Assembly: GCA_904063045.1 (NCBI GenBank)
Contig: CAJFCJ010000007.1
Coordinates: 2,673,404 to 2,737,403, forward strand
DNA from: Dimorphilus gyrociliatus
Lineage: Eukaryota; Animalia; Annelida
DNA: 64,000 nt
Reading direction: 5' to 3'
Shown: positions 55,864 through 64,000 of the stretch, in pieces
Layout: each line of letters opens with the position of its first letter
How positions within the stretch are numbered: position 1 is the first letter of the stretch
Program-made: the position numbers and the translations under genes
The notes under the pieces: generated by a model
Databases searched by the model: none
Told to the model about the DNA's origin: nothing
The model's input: the letters and a program-made list of their open reading frames with translations, nothing else

Positions 55864-56661
55864 TCAGGCAATGTCGTCGGAAGAGGAAGAAGAAGAGGAG
55901 GAGTCCCTACTATCGGCGTCACTATCTCCCAAATAGCAAATTACGTAGTCCTTAATAAAATTTCTTGGTTCGGTGACATTTTCGTCTTTGTAGGGCGTAG
56001 GGTCATCTTTTCTCGTTTCAAAGAAAGTTAGAACGGTAGCGCATTCGGAAATCTGTAATTGAGATAGGGGTTATTCGGGGTTGCGCTTATAAATAGGAGA
56101 CTGTCGCCGTCTCCAGTAATCAATAAATGAGCGACAGACGATGTCGTCGGTCAGTCTGGAATGATTGTACTAATGCGGGTAAATAATACGTTAATTATGT
56201 AAAAGAACAAAAAAAAAACTAGAAAAATACAAAAATAACCAACGCAATATGCGTTCTACTTTTTTTTTTCTCATGCTTACCTTTGGCGGTAATTTAATTA
56301 GTTCTTTGCAGTATTTATTCAATTGCAATTCTCTCTTCTCAGCTAACTGAATCGTATTCGCTTCTCTGGGCTTGTGAACTGGCAAACAACTCGTAATCTT
56401 TCGGGGATTTTCGTTAGCAGCGGCCGTTTCAGCAAATTCGGCAATGAGGGCGTAGTGCATAGCATGGAAATCTTGATAAGTCCTCTTTACGACATTTGCT
56501 CTCCCATCCATCCACTTTACTTCTACTACAAAGGCATAATCTGAAGGATAATCGCCATTCTCGTCTTTTTTAACGCATCTAATCGGTGCGAAACCGGACA
56601 CGGTGATGTTCGAGATTGGCGTTGTTGTTTTAGTTTCTACTTCAGACGTCTGAACTAACAT
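55864..56661 (-). CDS. PX-domain-only protein (SH3PXD2/p47phox/PXDC1-like PX), 2 exons
   Basis: YAFVVEVKWMDG..VVKRTYQDFHAMH..LAEKRELQLNKYCKELIKLPPK spliced (gtaagc...caattacag) to ISECATVLTFFETRKDD. It ends in a Ser-rich tail and stop at 55864, with no SH3 domain. Confidence 0.8.
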
Positions 56662-57808
56662 TGACAGTCATCGCATGGTCCTGCCCTGAAGGAACAAAAG
56701 AAGAAAAATTTCTTATTATAGTCGTTCATTATTCATTCCAGGCATTATCTTGCTTCGTTTCGTTTTTAATGTCAACCGCTCCTTTTTTCCAGCTCTTATT
56801 AAATCCCTTTACGGGCCTATACGAAGAGGAAAACGATTGTCCTCCGTTTACAATGGCTCTATACAATTATTTGTTCTAGACCTATATTTTTCTCACGGAA
56901 ACGAGGCTTTTATCTTACTTTCCGGTGGAAATGCAGGTGATAAGAAGTGTTTTTTTTTGTAGATTAATTAGCAGTTTGCACTCTTGACACCTAACGACCT
57001 TTGATAAGCGATTGGTCGACGCTGCACGCCAACAATGCAAGCCTATAGAGTAGTAATAGGAAGACGTGCGCGTGTTTATACTTACTTGCGCGCATACGCA
57101 GCTTTACTAAATATAAATTTGCATGTGTATGATTTATTTATATATAGAAATATATTTTATATCTGTATATTTAAAACAGATCGCTGTTATTTAAAGATTA
57201 TGAATATTTCAACAGACTAATATCGCCAAGAGTTCGAGACCCTCACATAGGCATAATTAAAAATCTGAAATATTCAAATGACCATATTGGAACATGCGGT
57301 ACTTACCTATACAGTAAAAATCACACTCGTCCACTCAAACAGCGACAACTATTAACTGTCGATACTGCAAAAAATCCCCGCAGTTCGACACTGCTCGTAT
57401 GATTCACGCGATCGTCTGCATCTGTATAATGCTAAGTATCGTATAGCAGTGCCACCTAGGAAACTGTTCTGATTTCATGTTTACTTGCTTTTGGTTCTTT
57501 TAATATTCTAACTCTGGAAAAGGACTTTGCCCTGAACATAATAAAAGCCTAGATTTTCTATTGCGATTATATATAAGAAATATTACAATATGGGCCTTAA
57601 TTGAATTTTGAAATCGAATGCCCGGACCGCGGACGGAAATGCCTCTTTCGACATTGACCTTGGATAATGTGGGTTTCGTATTTTGGACTCTTCGTACTGC
57701 ATATTATTTGAATCACACCTCGGAACCATATCAAAGAACAATTAATTACACTACGAAACTACGAAATACTGGGAAATCTCTTGATTTAAGATCTAATTCA
57801 CCTATGAG

Positions 57809-60800
57809 ATGGGAAACGAGAACAGCTCACACTCTAAAGATAGTCGTAATAGACCACCTCGTTCTCTCAAGAATGATCGACACTCGTCAAGATCCACTTC
57901 GGTCGAATCACCTATGTCACAGGAGTCTGTTGAGCCAGTCGAAACTACTCAAATAGTTCAAGCCGAGAATATCGAACGACCGGAATCTACGGAAACAGTA
58001 GATGTCGAAGAAAGTCCACATCAAGCTCTACTATTAGCGATCAAGGAAGCTATGCTATCAAGCAGACAAGAAAATCAGGTTGAACACGCAGCAATAGCAA
58101 TTTTATCAAATATAGAAGAAATCACACAGAGTAGTTCTTCTGAACAAGAAACAAAAGAAAATACTGCGAAGTTTATAAAAGTGTTCGTAGCTGTTGGTTT
58201 ACCTAAAATATTCATGGTTGAATTTAAGAAAGCTGCTGCTTTCCTAACTGAAAGATCAATTACTGAAACTTCCGTTAGTCTATTTAAAACAGTTGGAATA
58301 TTAGTAGAAATGTTTCGTTTATTATCATCCTACGGAAAATCCGAATGGGTTAAACATATGGACGACGATAGTGGAAAAAAAGTGGCTACAGTTTTAATAA
58401 ATATATTAAAGTAAGCATTGTTTATTTTTTAAAACGAAAGTTACATTCGTAAATAAATATATCTCTATTAATTTTACAGTTGGCACGGAACAGATAGAGT
58501 TCCTTCCCTAGACGTAAGTTGAACTAGAAATTCATATAATACTTCTTTTTTTTCATTGTTAATAATAAGTTTTCTCTTCTTTTTTCTTTTTCTTCATTGA
58601 AAATAGCTGCATGCGTCATTGATATGCTCAATCTGCAATTTTTTATCTGTTATTTATATCGATCCACTTACGGATACAGAAATGAAAGAAGTTGTTAAAA
58701 ATCATTTAGAAAAATTAAACGAATTAAATCATTCAGATGTGAAAAATGCCGCATCGAATGCTTTATTACTTATACAATTAAAGGAGACTGCTCGTAATAG
58801 AGAACCACGAGTTGAAGCTGAACTTTTACAGCAAATTCAACAATTCGGTCAACTTCTTGATCGTAGAAATAATCAAACTCAAATTTCTGATCGTCAAAAG
58901 CAAATTGAAGCTGTGAAGTTAGTTGAAGTTGGAATGCATCGTGTTTTGGTAGAGAACATAAAACGTTGGCTGTTAAGTCCACATAAATGGGCTGCTTTTA
59001 ATCAAAGTGGTAAAATGTCATCGGATGTAAACGAATGGTTTTCCCAAGTTGCTGCTATGTGTAAAGTATCGAAATTGTTTTGTACAGCTATCACGAGAGC
59101 AGGTATACATACACCTCTCATCGATTTCTTAAATAATGATCAAGTACAAGACGCTTTCGAAAGGAATGATAAAACGCAGGCAATCGTTGCATTCTCCATA
59201 TCGACATTAAATTCAATTGGTGGTCAGCGAATGGCAAGAAGGCTCTTAGACAATTCGCAAGTTTCAAAGGTATTGGTTTATTATGCAACAACGTCGAAGA
59301 GTGTAAACGTTACTGGTTTATCCTATTTGGCTTTAAGTCGTTTAGCGGCTTTATGTCCATATAAATCGAAAGCTGAACTAGGTCCGAATCCAACATTAAG
59401 TGATTGCGAGATGTTGTTAGCAACTTACGCAGCATATAAACAGTTAGGAGGTGTCCTTGGCGACTTTCTAGCGAAATATACTGATTTACCAAAAATATTT
59501 ACGAAAGCGATGCTTGAATTGTCGGTAAAAAGCGAAGAACCTCTAGACGAGTCCGATTTTAAATTGAGAATAAGACCAGTAATTGCTTCTATTTCATTAT
59601 TCTCTGACAAAAGTCTGCAATTTTCTGAATCCGTAGTAGAGCATGGAATTTCTGCTGCAGTGGAAAAGCTTCTTAGTAGTAGAAATTATAAAATAAATAT
59701 AAAGGAGGATAGGTACGGTGATGTACTTAACGTCTGCACAAATTTAGTCGCCTATTGCCTTCGTAGTCGCAAATCATGGAAAAGCTTTGATAGACCGATT
59801 TTATGGAAAAGTCTCTTTGATATAGCAAACAATGAATCTTTGGGTAAGGATCACGTTCTTAGAGCAACTTCTATGCTAGGTTTTGTACAAGTGTACAATG
59901 TAATACGTCAATCGGACAGTATAATACAACCTTTTGGTAAGCCTGAATTCCCATCGCTAACTGCTTCATCAAACGATATGGCTTTGCTTTTAAGATTGTG
60001 GAATTGTACAAATGACGACGAAGAAAAAATGTTGGGTGATTATTTAGCCTTTTTAAATTTGGGTACAATTTATGCAAAAAAATGTATCGAACTAGTTCCT
60101 ACTACAAAATCAATATCTGAAATATTGAATGATAATGATAGTGTTGTTGAAACACGTCAAATGTTAGCAATTATTAATAATATTGTTCTGGAATCAGAGA
60201 TTTTTGCAGTTCAGCTATGCCAGGGAGGTCTTCTAGATTGCCTTTGCTCCATACTACAAGCTCCGCAATCTATAAAAGGATTAGCAAATTCCCTTCTCGA
60301 ACCATCAGTTTGTATTTTACACGGATGCGCGTTATACGAAAAAAGTATGCCATTTTACGCTAAATCTAAAGTAATGGAAGCTTTGCTGCCCTACGTAGTT
60401 CCTGAAGCTTTAAATATCAAAGATCTTGCCGATGATCTTAAGAGGCGGGCGGGGACTGCTGCCCTTTTAATAAACTACTATGACCCCATTCAAGTACAAC
60501 CGTTTTTAGAGAATATTCGAATTAGGAAATCATCTTTTGACCAACTTCAATACTTAAAAAATATGTACGCGTCCACCAAGGTAGCTCAAAAAGATCAAAG
60601 GAAAATGCTTATGAAATATTTAAATGACTGTGGTTTAGCGAAGGCTATGGCAGAACAACTGCAACAAATGCACACTAATGACACTCTTGTAGAAGAGTTC
60701 GCCCTGACCGACTTACTATTGACAAATATGCTAAATATGACAGATTCCGACGAAAGATTCTCTAATGAATTAAGAGATAATGATGCTCTTTTAGCTGTTC

Positions 60801-61927
60801 AAGAAATTGTCAGAGATCCAAGAGTTCGACAACAATCAACAACAGACGGTAAATATACAGCCATAGTTGGAACGGGACTAAGTATATTAGCCAATTGCGC
60901 TCAATATCAGTCAAACCGTAATGCTTTGGTAGGAATGCGCATGATAGATGATTTATTACTTTACGTACAATTGGATGGGCATCTTGATACTCTCAGGGTT
61001 CCGGCTATGATGACAATTTCCTTTCTAGTAAATGAGGATAATGCACATGTTTTAAGAACAACTTCGCGTGACCGACTTTTACGCTATATGTTGGAACAAC
61101 TGGAGCAATGCGCCCTAAATGATGTATCGAATGGTTATAAACCTTCTGAATTGCTATGTGGCTTGAGACGATTGGCGTTGAATGAGACAAATGCAGCTGC
61201 ATTAGTTTATGAAGACACACTTCCTTTATTGGCAACTCTTATTGAACATTTTTCAACAAAATCGCTAAATCAAACGGAGAGTCTTGAACATTCTCTTTAC
61301 TTGCTGTGGACTCTGCTGTTTATTGACGATAATAAGAAAGCTGTAAGAGATGATACAATGCTTATTGCTCAACTCGAGGAATTGGCTAAGCAAGAATATG
61401 CTGATATAAATATCAGACAAATTGCCCAAGGCGTCCTTTTTGAAGTTGATATTACAGGCTCAAGGTCATTACCTGTTTTAAATAGACAATTATCAATGAA
61501 AGATAGTTATTCCACGCCAAAAACATATATCTCCTTTGATAATAGAGATATTTCGGTTGCCCAATGCGTCAGCTATTACCTACGCGGAAGAAATGTTGAC
61601 GTCGTTACCACTCGCGAAATACTTCAGAGTGCAGTAAATCCTTATTCAACATTGTCAAGAATTGTTAAATCTGTTCCAGTAATTATTGTTATCATGTCAA
61701 GGCATTACATTCAAAGTTCCCATTCAAGAACCGAAGCCCAACTAGCCGCTGCATGGAGAAAAAAAATATTACCCGTCAAGGGTAGAAGATTGAAAATTGG
61801 CGGATGGTTAGCAAGACTAACAGTTGGCTTACATACAATCGATTTGTCAAAAAGAGTTCCAGATCACTGTAGACAAAAATCTCTGGAGGAGATATATGAA
61901 TCGGTAGTTAACGAAATTAACCCATAA
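57809..61927 (+). CDS. ARM/HEAT-repeat protein with C-terminal TIR (TIR_2-like) domain, 1,318 aa, 3 exons
   Basis: Exons 57809-58410, 58480-58513, 58607-61927 are phase-consistent. N-terminus MGNENS. Repeated helical ARM-like units, then TYISF...YYLRGRNVDV..VIIVIMSRHYIQSSHSRTEAQLA..KKILPV..GGWLARL, typical of invertebrate ARM-TIR proteins. Confidence 0.8.
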
Positions 61928-62692
61928 GAAAAGAAATACATTATCAAAAAAAAATGAATCATTTTCAATAGAAAATGATATTTTATTTATTTTCCCATTC
62001 AACTAAAATTAATAAGAGAAACGAAAGGAGGAATAGACAAAAAGAATGATAGAAAATTATTAAGATTTAAAAGCGAAAGCATATGTGTGTGTGAGTGAGT
62101 GTATTTTTTTTTTTAAAAAAACAAATGTGACTTTTTTTTATTTGTATTTACACATAAATTTATATATATTTTTATCTCGAATTTATTCATTTATTTATAT
62201 TATAGTATACGTGTATGTGTATTTTATCTACTTTTATTTGGCCATAAATATATATTATATTGAATGGATTAAACTAGAATACTGCTTACTGTACATAGAT
62301 AAATTGAAAATGGATTATTATTCTTTCGTGCTTTTTGAGGAAGATAAAATAATTAAGTAAGAATTTTATGTAGGTTTTTTAGTTCGATGTTTATTCAAGC
62401 AAGAAAATGCATAGGGTGAGAAGTTTTCAAAAGAGACACAAAGAAAAGAGAGAAAGAGGTATTAAGAAACAAAAATAGAACTATGACTAATAATGAAATA
62501 GGCAGAGGTTGCTGAAAAAAAAAATGTTTTCTCTTTTGCATAATGACTCATTATTTCTCTTCTTTTTTTTTGCAGTATATTTGCATAATTATATTAATTA
62601 ATTACAAAGTCCTTTTTTGTAACCAGTACATATTATTTTATCTATTTTTTTCTCTTTATTTTCCAGATTAAAAGTGCAATCAATTCTCTCTT

Positions 62693-62694
<2 letters not shown>

Positions 62695-62726
<32 letters not shown>
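62695..62726. repeat. (CT)16 microsatellite between convergent 3' ends
   Basis: 32-nt CT run read directly. Confidence 0.9.
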
Positions 62727-62728
<2 letters not shown>

Positions 62729-62927
62729 TTTCAACAGAGTTTTTTTTTCTGTGTCTCATCCCCTTTAAAATAGACGAATTAAAAAAAGTTTTTAGACGTT
62801 CATACGCCCAAGTCTATATAGGCAGAAAAAGAGAATAGAAAACAAGACTATTCCTTCTCTAAGCTTAATCAATACTGTTACGGCTGCATGCAAAAAATTG
62901 AAATTTCATTGGAACGCTATGATGCTA

Positions 62928-64000
62928 TTAAATATCTGTTGTTTCGTCAACTTTCTTTATCCAAGGCCATTTTTTTTCTTTATAGATTTTAACTAAAAGG
63001 CGTGTAATGACGGCTGCTGCTGGTATTAGGGCACCGGCAAACATGTATATGACAGGAGCAACTCCGGCAAGGTCAGACTCTGGCGAATCGTATGTCAGCT
63101 GAATCATTAGAAGAGATAGTGCCATATTTTGAAAACCAGTTTCTAGACCAATAGTGATTGCTTTATCTCTACCTTGTCTGAATATAAACCCAGCCGAAGT
63201 TCCCAATATATAACCGATACTTGAGAGCAATATAACTCCTAAGTATTCTCTCCAAGTGGCAACTTGGAGAGCGTAGTAGTATACATAGATGCCAAATGAT
63301 AAAAATACTAAGCCAATAATAACAATGAACGGCTTCAAATATTTTTCGATGACATTGGAAATCTTGACTGCAAAATTTGTCAGAACAACTCCTATTAAAA
63401 CTGGAACAATTACAGCTGCTAAAGAAGTAAAGACATTAACAACTGGAATCTCAATTTTAGCTCCATCGTCTATAATAAATCTACTAAGTGCCCACAACCA
63501 AAATGGAGTTGTTCCGAGAGCGGTAAAAGTCGATATGGTTGTCATAATAATACTTAATTCTAGGCTTGCATCCAGTAAAACCGCAAACACATTACTTCCT
63601 GCTCCACCGGGCGAACAGCCAATACTAACTAAACCAATTGATGGATAAGAGGACATTTTTAACATTCTGGTCAAGAGAAGAGAAACTGGTGCCATTATTA
63701 AAAATTGACATAAAAATCCAATTATTGGCGCAACTGGTTTCTTTAAAATTTCTTTGATTTCTTTCCATTTAAGTTTACAACCAAAGCCAATATTATTAAA
63801 AACTATTAAAATTCCCAAGGTTATCTGAAAAGCCAACTCTAATTTTTTTGCATTTGGTCGTTTAACCTTAACTTTTATTGGTGGACCAACTTCACAATTT
63901 GAATTCTCACCAGATGGCAATAATCTAATTTTAGTTATTCCAAGTCTTTCTGCATTTATCTTAATATTTATCCTTTGGAATCCATTTTCTATTAGGATAA
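62928..64000 (-). CDS. SLC10A: SLC10 sodium/bile-acid symporter family (SLC10A3/A5-like long N-terminus); partial, 5' end outside the window
   Basis: KKPVAPIIGFLCQFLIMAP, GCSPGGAGSN, LSIIMTTIST, TIGLETGFQN. The frame stays open from the ORF-track start (63920) to the window edge. Confidence 0.9.
   Translation of the reverse strand, partial: ILIENGFQRINIKINAERLGITKIRLLPSGENSNCEVGPPIKVKVKRPNAKKLELAFQITLGILIVFNNIGFGCKLKWKEIKEILKKPVAPIIGFLCQFLIMAPVSLLLTRMLKMSSYPSIGLVSIGCSPGGAGSNVFAVLLDASLELSIIMTTISTFTALGTTPFWLWALSRFIIDDGAKIEIPVVNVFTSLAAVIVPVLIGVVLTNFAVKISNVIEKYLKPFIVIIGLVFLSFGIYVYYYALQVATWREYLGVILLSSIGYILGTSAGFIFRQGRDKAITIGLETGFQNMALSLLMIQLTYDSPESDLAGVAPVIYMFAGALIPAAAVITRLLVKIYKEKKWPWIKKVDETTDI

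Follow-up and report, generated by a model that had tools for sequence, protein, structure and literature searches.

Does an animal protein that joins a long armadillo (ARM) solenoid to a TIR domain with a conserved glutamate, and that has no SAM domain, work as an enzyme at the membrane or as an adaptor? The question is raised by a gene of the annelid Dimorphilus gyrociliatus on contig CAJFCJ010000007.1 (assembly GCA_904063045.1). The DNA analyzed, called the window below, is the whole stretch of 64,000 nucleotides at 2,673,404 to 2,737,403, and positions are counted from its first letter. The gene has three coding exons on the + strand within 57809-61927 and encodes a cytosolic product of 1318 amino acids (3954 coding nucleotides). 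It is very probably a SAM-less, long-form member of the ARM-TIR(-SAM) family. Our best explanation of the whole, to which we give a probability of about 0.5, is a membrane-anchored long ARM-TIR protein that would cluster and process nicotinamide adenine dinucleotide (NAD+).

Exon-3 residue numbers are counted from 58607, and adding 212 converts them to full-length numbering. Sequence and fold searches used the separate products of exon 1 and exon 3. The features of the protein are:

57809-57826, + strand: MGNENS, N-myristoylation consensus with Gly2 and Ser6 (open reading frame; family consensus MGxxxS)
57809-57898, + strand: basic leader, amino acids 1-30, net charge +4 (charge count)
57899-58024, + strand: acidic, Ser/Glu/Pro-rich unstructured linker, amino acids 31-72, net charge -10 (charge count; AlphaFold)
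58025-58410, + strand: start of the N-terminal helical domain, six predicted helices (AlphaFold)
58910-59458, + strand: helical module M1, exon-3 amino acids 102-284 (hhalign self-comparison)
59459-60034, + strand: helical module M2, exon-3 amino acids 285-476 (hhalign self-comparison)
60035-60595, + strand: helical module M3, exon-3 amino acids 477-663 (hhalign self-comparison)
60596-61156, + strand: helical module M4, exon-3 amino acids 664-850, the sole module shared with short-form ARM-TIR proteins (phmmer, hhalign)
61157-61501, + strand: canonical ARM segment adjoining the TIR, exon-3 amino acids 851-965 (predicted local distance difference test score, pLDDT, above 90; Pfam Arm hits of homologues map here)
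61514-61924, + strand: TIR domain, exon-3 amino acids 970-1106, full-length 1182-1318 (Pfam TIR_2; VIA-align)
61595-61612, + strand: VDVVTT, exon-3 amino acids 997-1002, replacing the family V-W-M/I-D at the start of beta-B and the BB loop (alignment)
61733-61735, + strand: codon of the conserved Glu, exon-3 E1043, full-length E1255 (alignment, structural ranges)

A long-form branch of the ARM-TIR family

An exhaustive phmmer search with exon 3 returned 221 proteins at E ≤0.001. This search recovered the family, while a word-based protein search gave the 92% orthologue as its sole match. Two relatives are colinear with the window protein: Lingula anatina XP_013390051.1 (1431 amino acids; 30% identity, E 4e-125) over exon-3 amino acids 98-1098, and XP_077995347.1 of the hemichordate Glandiceps talaboti (1092 amino acids; 24% identity, E 1e-54) over its full length. 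About 100 hits are short forms of 550-780 amino acids (around 650) with an ARM-TIR(-SAM) architecture, and these match exon-3 amino acids ~650-1075 only. They come from sources that include amphioxus, echinoderms, a crinoid and a D. gyrociliatus paralogue. When 69 relatives were scanned with Pfam, TIR_2 was found in 68, Arm in 44, ARM_ARMC5 in 44, and SAM models in a minority. A preliminary description of the locus, made from the DNA letters, had assigned the protein to an invertebrate ARM-TIR class with an expanded arm; the roughly 100 phmmer relatives, the 44 of 69 with Pfam Arm, and three extra tandem modules relative to the ~650-residue short forms bear this out.

A tree built from the ARM and TIR region of 120 sequences groups the four long forms in one clade (SH-like support 0.94), in an order that resembles the species tree. 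Within this long-form branch, which is old and bilaterian, the gene is the orthologue of the annelid lineage. The branch leading to the window lineage is about double the length of the others, and the window protein keeps 25 of 47 family-conserved columns, compared with 36 and 39 for Lingula and Glandiceps.

The ARM-TIR class has been catalogued in immune-gene surveys of oyster and Aplysia (PMC4346834, PMC9334734). The family corresponds to cluster A0A0B7AZE4_1 of a preprint, defined by a TPR-clan domain and a Glu-bearing TIR (10.64898/2026.04.20.719644). That cluster holds TIRs from at least nine D. gyrociliatus proteins, and none among the entries listed fits the TIR coordinates of the window gene (10.64898/2026.04.20.719644). 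The gene is an architectural variant of this catalogued family and opens no new category.

Other members were seen in passing. Contigs L003, L004 and L005 carry additional long-form genes, whose separate exons account for about a dozen of the short hits. These homologues, on metagenome/Logan contigs, lie at L004 2782-3981, L003 379-4281 and L005 9953-10549, with short introns and a GC content of 39-47%. In L004 an intron splits the catalytic motif between CR and TEAEYA, and the BB loop starts V-T-S-V-D, likewise without Trp. The D. gyrociliatus paralogue P0009 (DgyrCDS7910, 1195 amino acids) starts MGSAPSK; since it has two TIR_2 stretches and two TPR-clan regions, it appears to be a duplicated ARM-TIR unit in one protein.

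Four helical modules and an ARM segment

Repeats went undetected in a pairwise self-BLAST of the protein and are visible to profiles only. A profile of the four long-form proteins was compared with itself by hhalign; segments taken from a 150-sequence MAFFT alignment were unreliable N-terminally, where the short forms were misplaced. Three self-matches were obtained: exon-3 amino acids 102-622 against 285-807 (probability 99.6%, E 1e-24, 491 columns, score 206), 102-429 against 477-807 (98%, E 3e-13, 316 columns, score 116) and 97-246 against 664-807 (93%, E 4e-7, 142 columns, score 68). Reversed and column-shuffled controls reached scores of 17-30 at best (E 0.02-0.6). The period is about 187 amino acids, units begin near exon-3 amino acids 102, 285, 477 and 664, and together they cover about 750 amino acids. 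The consensus of a unit includes G..LA, SE.F...L...G, IL..CA and L..Y. The preliminary description had read roughly four degenerate repeats over ~950 amino acids; the number of modules and the motif agree with this analysis, and the span is shorter.

Compared with the unit at the same position in Lingula or Glandiceps, a unit shows 19-38% identity; compared with its sister units, 10-19%. Because units are closer to their positional counterparts than to each other, the quadruplication of the module is older than the protostome-deuterostome split. A fifth module, formed by the exon-1 helices and exon-3 amino acids 1-100, was unsupported (hhalign E 0.01-0.05, probability below 5%), though a VGLPKIF stretch there resembles the start of a unit.

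The segment next to the TIR is the most canonical. Pfam Arm hits of the homologues map onto exon-3 amino acids 857-906, 12 of 15 family-conserved positions are kept over 763-944, and in the model that AlphaFold built for exon 3 from a 150-row alignment, pLDDT exceeds 90 from residue 750 to the end. In Foldseek the top ranks were full-length SARM1, Caenorhabditis elegans TIR-1, designed armadillo proteins, beta-catenin and APC. ARM proteins (designed ARM, beta-catenin) match exon-3 amino acids ~200-950 at Z 16-17 by VIA-align, which for helical repeats shows fold type and not kinship. Language-model neighbors of exon-3 amino acids 102-850, with TIR clusters excluded, were ARM_LRRK2, ULK4, Arm, ARMC9, KAP, UNC45 and V-ATPase H, all of ARM type, and are taken as a lead only. 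By homology and by structural match of the predicted model, the region N-terminal to the TIR is assigned to Armadillo, as in the rest of the family.

The TIR domain and its glutamate

The C-terminal domain is a TIR, as had been proposed. Pfam TIR_2 scores 30 bits with the window protein against a cut-off of 28. Superposition of model residues 970-1105 on human SARM1 TIR 561-700 by VIA-align gave Z 17.8, the best structural match, with a root-mean-square deviation of 2.0 Å over 124 residues and 18% identity; the Hydra TRR-2, MyD88 and SPARTA TIRs tie with SARM1 within about 1 Z unit. We regard the predicted TIR fold as secure. No SAM domain was found by Pfam, and the TIR extends to the last residue, leaving no room for a further C-terminal domain, in keeping with the earlier observation that SAM domains are missing.

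The preliminary description had placed the Glu of SHSRTEA at the catalytic position of SARM1, plant and bacterial TIRs. The motif SHSRTEAQ occupies exon-3 amino acids 1038-1045. With the TIR alone, phmmer found no match in the PDB, and a 28-sequence profile was needed. This profile aligns the family Glu with the HKE Glu of a TIR-1/SARM1 chimera, the WCVRELE Glu of RPS4 and the WCWDELE Glu of Cat1, and the structural ranges 970-1105 and 561-700 agree with this placement. The profile alignment puts the Glu at the catalytic position of helix alpha-C. Across the 28 sequences of the TIR alignment, the Glu of S..CR.EA hardly varies; it is 96% conserved in the family and kept in all long forms (window protein, orthologue, Lingula, Glandiceps and L004). 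Among the other conserved TIR residues, the window protein retains S1037, R1041, A1044, P1056, G1066, W1067 and L1068 along with E1043.

A myristoylation-type N-terminus

The first codons read MGNENS at 57809, which agrees with the myristoylation pattern noted before, and the acidic linker behind the leader is disordered as described: residues 1-69 have pLDDT 39-51 and no secondary structure in AlphaFold, followed by six helices. The first 23 residues are identical in the orthologue despite saturated synonymous sites, which is unusual for a disordered tail. Among relatives of at least 500 amino acids, 51 of 111 (46%) start with MG, and 40 of these fit MGxxx[ST]. In two others the start is probably mis-called, and MGS follows it after a few residues; the majority consensus of a 69-protein alignment opens with MGxxxS. 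These counts and the shared consensus make the myristoylation-type start a trait of the family, not a chance feature. Myristoyl anchoring of the protein is likely. Because Cys is absent near the start, a myristate acting with the basic patch is the more likely anchor compared with dual acylation. The membrane tether proposed earlier is therefore plausible and shared by the family, with acylation itself deduced from the pattern.

Orthologue and selective constraint

Logan run SRR23372228/9 contains an orthologous locus from another species (contigs L001/L002). Its start is likewise ATG-GGA-AAC, and neither the micro-exon nor any of the four splice sites has been lost; its introns differ from those of the window by insertions and deletions. 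Identity is about 81% for DNA and 91% (exon 3) and 81% (exon 1) for protein. For this one orthologue pair, the Nei-Gojobori ratio of nonsynonymous to synonymous substitutions (dN/dS) amounts to 0.031 in exon 3 and 0.081 in exon 1; dS, at about 1.5-1.9, is saturated. The ratio is ≤0.13 in every 100-residue window and 0.014-0.027 in those covering the TIR. This indicates that the gene is functional and under strong purifying selection. A test for positive selection was among the checks suggested in the preliminary description; this single pairwise comparison (0.03-0.08) shows neither diversifying selection nor an arms race. Because dN/dS is 0.03, the gene looks like a conserved single-copy orthologue and not like a fast-evolving immune sensor. 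No tandem array of the gene occurs within the 64-kb window.

Enzyme or adaptor

In the explanation that we prefer, N-myristoyltransferase would acylate Gly2, and the myristate with the basic patch would hold the protein to a membrane on its cytosolic side, leaving the long solenoid flexibly tethered. A partner or ligand would bind to this solenoid, which would also keep the adjacent TIR away from other TIRs. Engagement of the solenoid would then cluster TIRs on the membrane. The output would most likely be Glu-dependent NAD+ processing to a product of the cyclic ADP-ribose (cADPR) or ADP-ribose (ADPR) type, as for SARM1 and an oyster TIR of a neighboring cluster. By this analogy an enzyme output is our leading, still tentative, choice. 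Retention of the Glu makes catalysis possible without showing it. Of 61 Glu-bearing animal TIRs expressed in E. coli, 12 made a cADPR isomer in a Glu-dependent manner (10.64898/2026.04.20.719644). The oyster TIR A0A8W8J0Z4, from the neighboring cluster K1QUY0_1, was Active for cADPR in the same host (10.64898/2026.04.20.719644).

Several observations weigh against this explanation. Table S4 of the same preprint lists four isolated TIRs of cluster A0A0B7AZE4_1, from Chlamydomonas, Branchiostoma lanceolatum, Lepisosteus and Phallusia, and none is flagged 'Active' (10.64898/2026.04.20.719644). The B. lanceolatum TIR is nearly identical to that of the relative P0010. The short forms share 32 TIR columns with a conservation of 80% or more, and 13 of these are kept in the window protein. 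Relative to the family, its BB loop has Thr for Asp, Gln for the loop Gly and Val for the preceding Trp, in line with the VVTT reading given earlier for VDVVTT. The Cys of CR.E is replaced by Ser, the Tyr after the Glu by Leu, and most of alpha-B is lost. A His stands four residues before the Glu, where SARM1 and plant TIRs have Trp. The BB-loop and aromatic residues of catalytic TIRs are thus changed at three points: Thr for Asp, Val for Trp/Phe, and His at -4 from the Glu. In SARM1 the corresponding D594 and W638 help form the composite active site. The substitutions are common to the orthologue and are themselves under purifying selection. Neither a SAM nor another oligomerizing element is evident in the protein. 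The solenoid is also less well defined in places: Pfam gave no significant Arm hit in the protein itself, so that of the profile checks suggested earlier only TIR_2 succeeded, and the all-helical model of exon-3 amino acids 1-750 has low to middling confidence, since this stretch is covered by four sequences only. With 13 of 32 TIR positions kept, the BB-loop Asp and Gly lost and four same-cluster TIRs not flagged active, the term 'sensor-enzyme' used in the preliminary description goes beyond the evidence.

Alternatively, the TIR would be an adaptor only. The protein would then be a membrane-anchored scaffold that, like MyD88 and TRAM, signals purely by contacts of its TIR with other TIRs or with partners, with the Glu kept for structure or binding; TRAM is itself myristoylated. 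Such a role is a real possibility, nearly as likely as an enzyme output. The inactivity of all four same-cluster TIRs in E. coli, the small active share of Glu-bearing animal TIRs, the remodeling of the BB loop and alpha-B with loss of several family-invariant residues, and structural matches to the MyD88 and Hydra TRR-2 TIRs (Z 16.8-17.6) that are about as good as the one to SARM1 are all in its favor. It explains less well why S..CR.EA is 93-96% conserved in the family and why its Ser, Arg, Glu and Ala survive under a dN/dS of ~0.014-0.03, and the neighboring-cluster oyster TIR is Glu-dependently active. An isolated-domain negative in E. coli may moreover be a false negative, and such negatives may reflect a need for clustering.

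The anchor and the immune role can be questioned in the same way. If the MG start were coincidental, the protein would be soluble and its leader a mere disordered tail, and the Lingula and Glandiceps gene models do start without MG. We consider this unlikely, given the frequency of MG among the relatives, the family consensus, and the invariance of the first 23 residues between orthologues at saturated synonymous sites. The MGNENS leader also closely resembles the start of calcineurin B, a myristoylated protein, which counts against coincidence. A somewhat less remote alternative, though still on the unlikely side, is that the protein is no immune sensor but a conserved housekeeping, developmental or neuronal signaling protein, in line with what SARM1/TIR-1 do in development and in axons; the solenoid would then be a scaffold of constitutive function. 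The colinear orthologues in annelid, brachiopod and hemichordate, the dN/dS of 0.03, the conserved synteny with a PX-domain gene and the position outside any tandem array in the window agree with it.

Taking the preferred explanation further, the long form might be an ancient bilaterian device in which a myristoyl-tethered sensor binds a multivalent or polymeric ligand with its four modules and a SAM-less, remodeled TIR is switched on by membrane clustering to make an NAD+-derived messenger. We regard this as improbable as a whole; if true, it would mean that an animal TIR enzyme can be activated without SAM domains.

Gene structure, transcripts and neighbors

In the list of open reading frames, MGNENS starts a 201-codon frame at 57809 and a 1102-codon frame ends at 61927. 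The preliminary description had given the span and the 3.3-kb exon (3321 nucleotides) correctly and had missed a 34-nucleotide micro-exon. The gene is organized as follows, with UTR for untranslated region:

57719-57808, + strand: 5' UTR, minimum extent (start of a spliced 4360-nucleotide contig, run X3)
57809-58410, + strand: coding exon 1, 200 codons and 2 nucleotides (open reading frame; GT donor at 58411; joint 58410>58480 in X1 and X3)
58411-58479, + strand: intron 1, 69 nucleotides, GT..AG (DNA reading; orthologue; spliced contigs)
58480-58513, + strand: micro-exon, 34 nucleotides, flanked by AG and GTAAGT (kept in the orthologue with its splice sites; in spliced contigs)
58514-58606, + strand: intron 2, 93 nucleotides, GT..AG (DNA reading; orthologue; spliced contigs)
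58607-61927, + strand: coding exon 3, 3321 nucleotides, 1106 codons and stop (open reading frame; spliced contigs)
61928-62076, + strand: 3' UTR, minimum extent (RNA-derived contig)

The 4360-nucleotide contig of run X3 spans 57719-58410, 58480-58513 and 58607-62076, with both introns spliced out, and both joints (each GT..AG) are also present in a contig of a coral metatranscriptome. Because RNA-derived contigs cross both joints, the three-exon model is settled, and the gene is transcribed. Transcript pieces over 57912-61734 have at least 99% identity in the coral metatranscriptome and 95-99% in a marine metatranscriptome (runs X1 and X2), so the animal or close relatives were present in those samples. 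The intervals between the X2 differences are in many cases multiples of 3, as expected of third-codon positions. An out-of-frame ATG at 57804-57806, 5 nucleotides before the main start, begins an overlapping frame of 50 codons; this ATG is missing from the orthologue L001, and the context is better at the main ATG (57809).

Two genes flank the locus on the opposite strand:

56191-56661, - strand: exon of a PX-domain gene (Pfam PX, 30.8 bits), upstream
62928-63920, - strand: sodium/bile-acid symporter open reading frame, 330 uninterrupted codons (Pfam SBF, E 7e-33), just downstream and convergent

Local synteny is conserved, since the PX-domain neighbor is also present on the orthologous contigs L001 and L002. 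A dinucleotide microsatellite at ~62600-62840 yields mirror open reading frames that read RERERERE and SLSLSLSL, and 62077-62200 was passed over as repeat in read mapping.

Significance

ARM-TIR is among the commonest TIR architectures of invertebrates and has been catalogued. The gene described here defines a sparse, single-copy and strongly constrained long-form branch that is older than the protostome-deuterostome split. The family-wide myristoylation-type N-terminus points to membranes as the site where ARM-TIR proteins would act. The gene bears on whether, outside SARM1 and TLRs, animal TIRs with the Glu become enzymes only on clustering at membranes, and also on the dispensability of the BB loop and on the ligand of the repeated solenoid. 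With its compact genome and confirmed transcript, it is a clean candidate for such tests.

Comparison with known systems

With the ARM-TIR(-SAM) family, the window protein shares homology (phmmer E as low as 1e-17) that covers M4, the ARM segment and the TIR, together with an LA.ND.NK-type ARM motif, the S..CR.EA and P...GWL motifs of the TIR, and the MGxxxS N-terminus. It differs in being about twice as long, with three extra modules of ~187 amino acids and an N-terminal helical domain, in lacking the C-terminal SAM present in part of the family, and in its diverged BB loop and alpha-B. The Lingula and Glandiceps proteins, annotated as 'uncharacterized protein', have the same four modules, ARM and TIR without SAM and belong to the same clade, whereas they keep more of the TIR consensus and their annotated N-termini lack MG. 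The oyster (Magallana gigas) TIR A0A8W8J0Z4 has the CR.EA..A and GWL motifs in common with the window protein; it belongs to a 639-residue protein of a different cluster and keeps the VWMD start of the BB loop that is lost here.

SARM1 has the order ARM-SAM-SAM-TIR, a SAM octamer and a mitochondrial targeting leader. SARM1 and C. elegans TIR-1 share with the window protein an ARM solenoid and a TIR with Glu at the catalytic position, and to this extent the label 'SARM1-analogous' of the preliminary description stands. It does not extend to the order of domains, since the window TIR follows directly on the ARM segment with no tandem SAM in between, or to the SAM oligomerizer. Within the TIR, the Tyr-Arg-Arg after beta-A, the BB-loop Asp and the Trp at Glu-4 of SARM1 correspond to Phe-Asp-Asn, Thr and His in the window protein.

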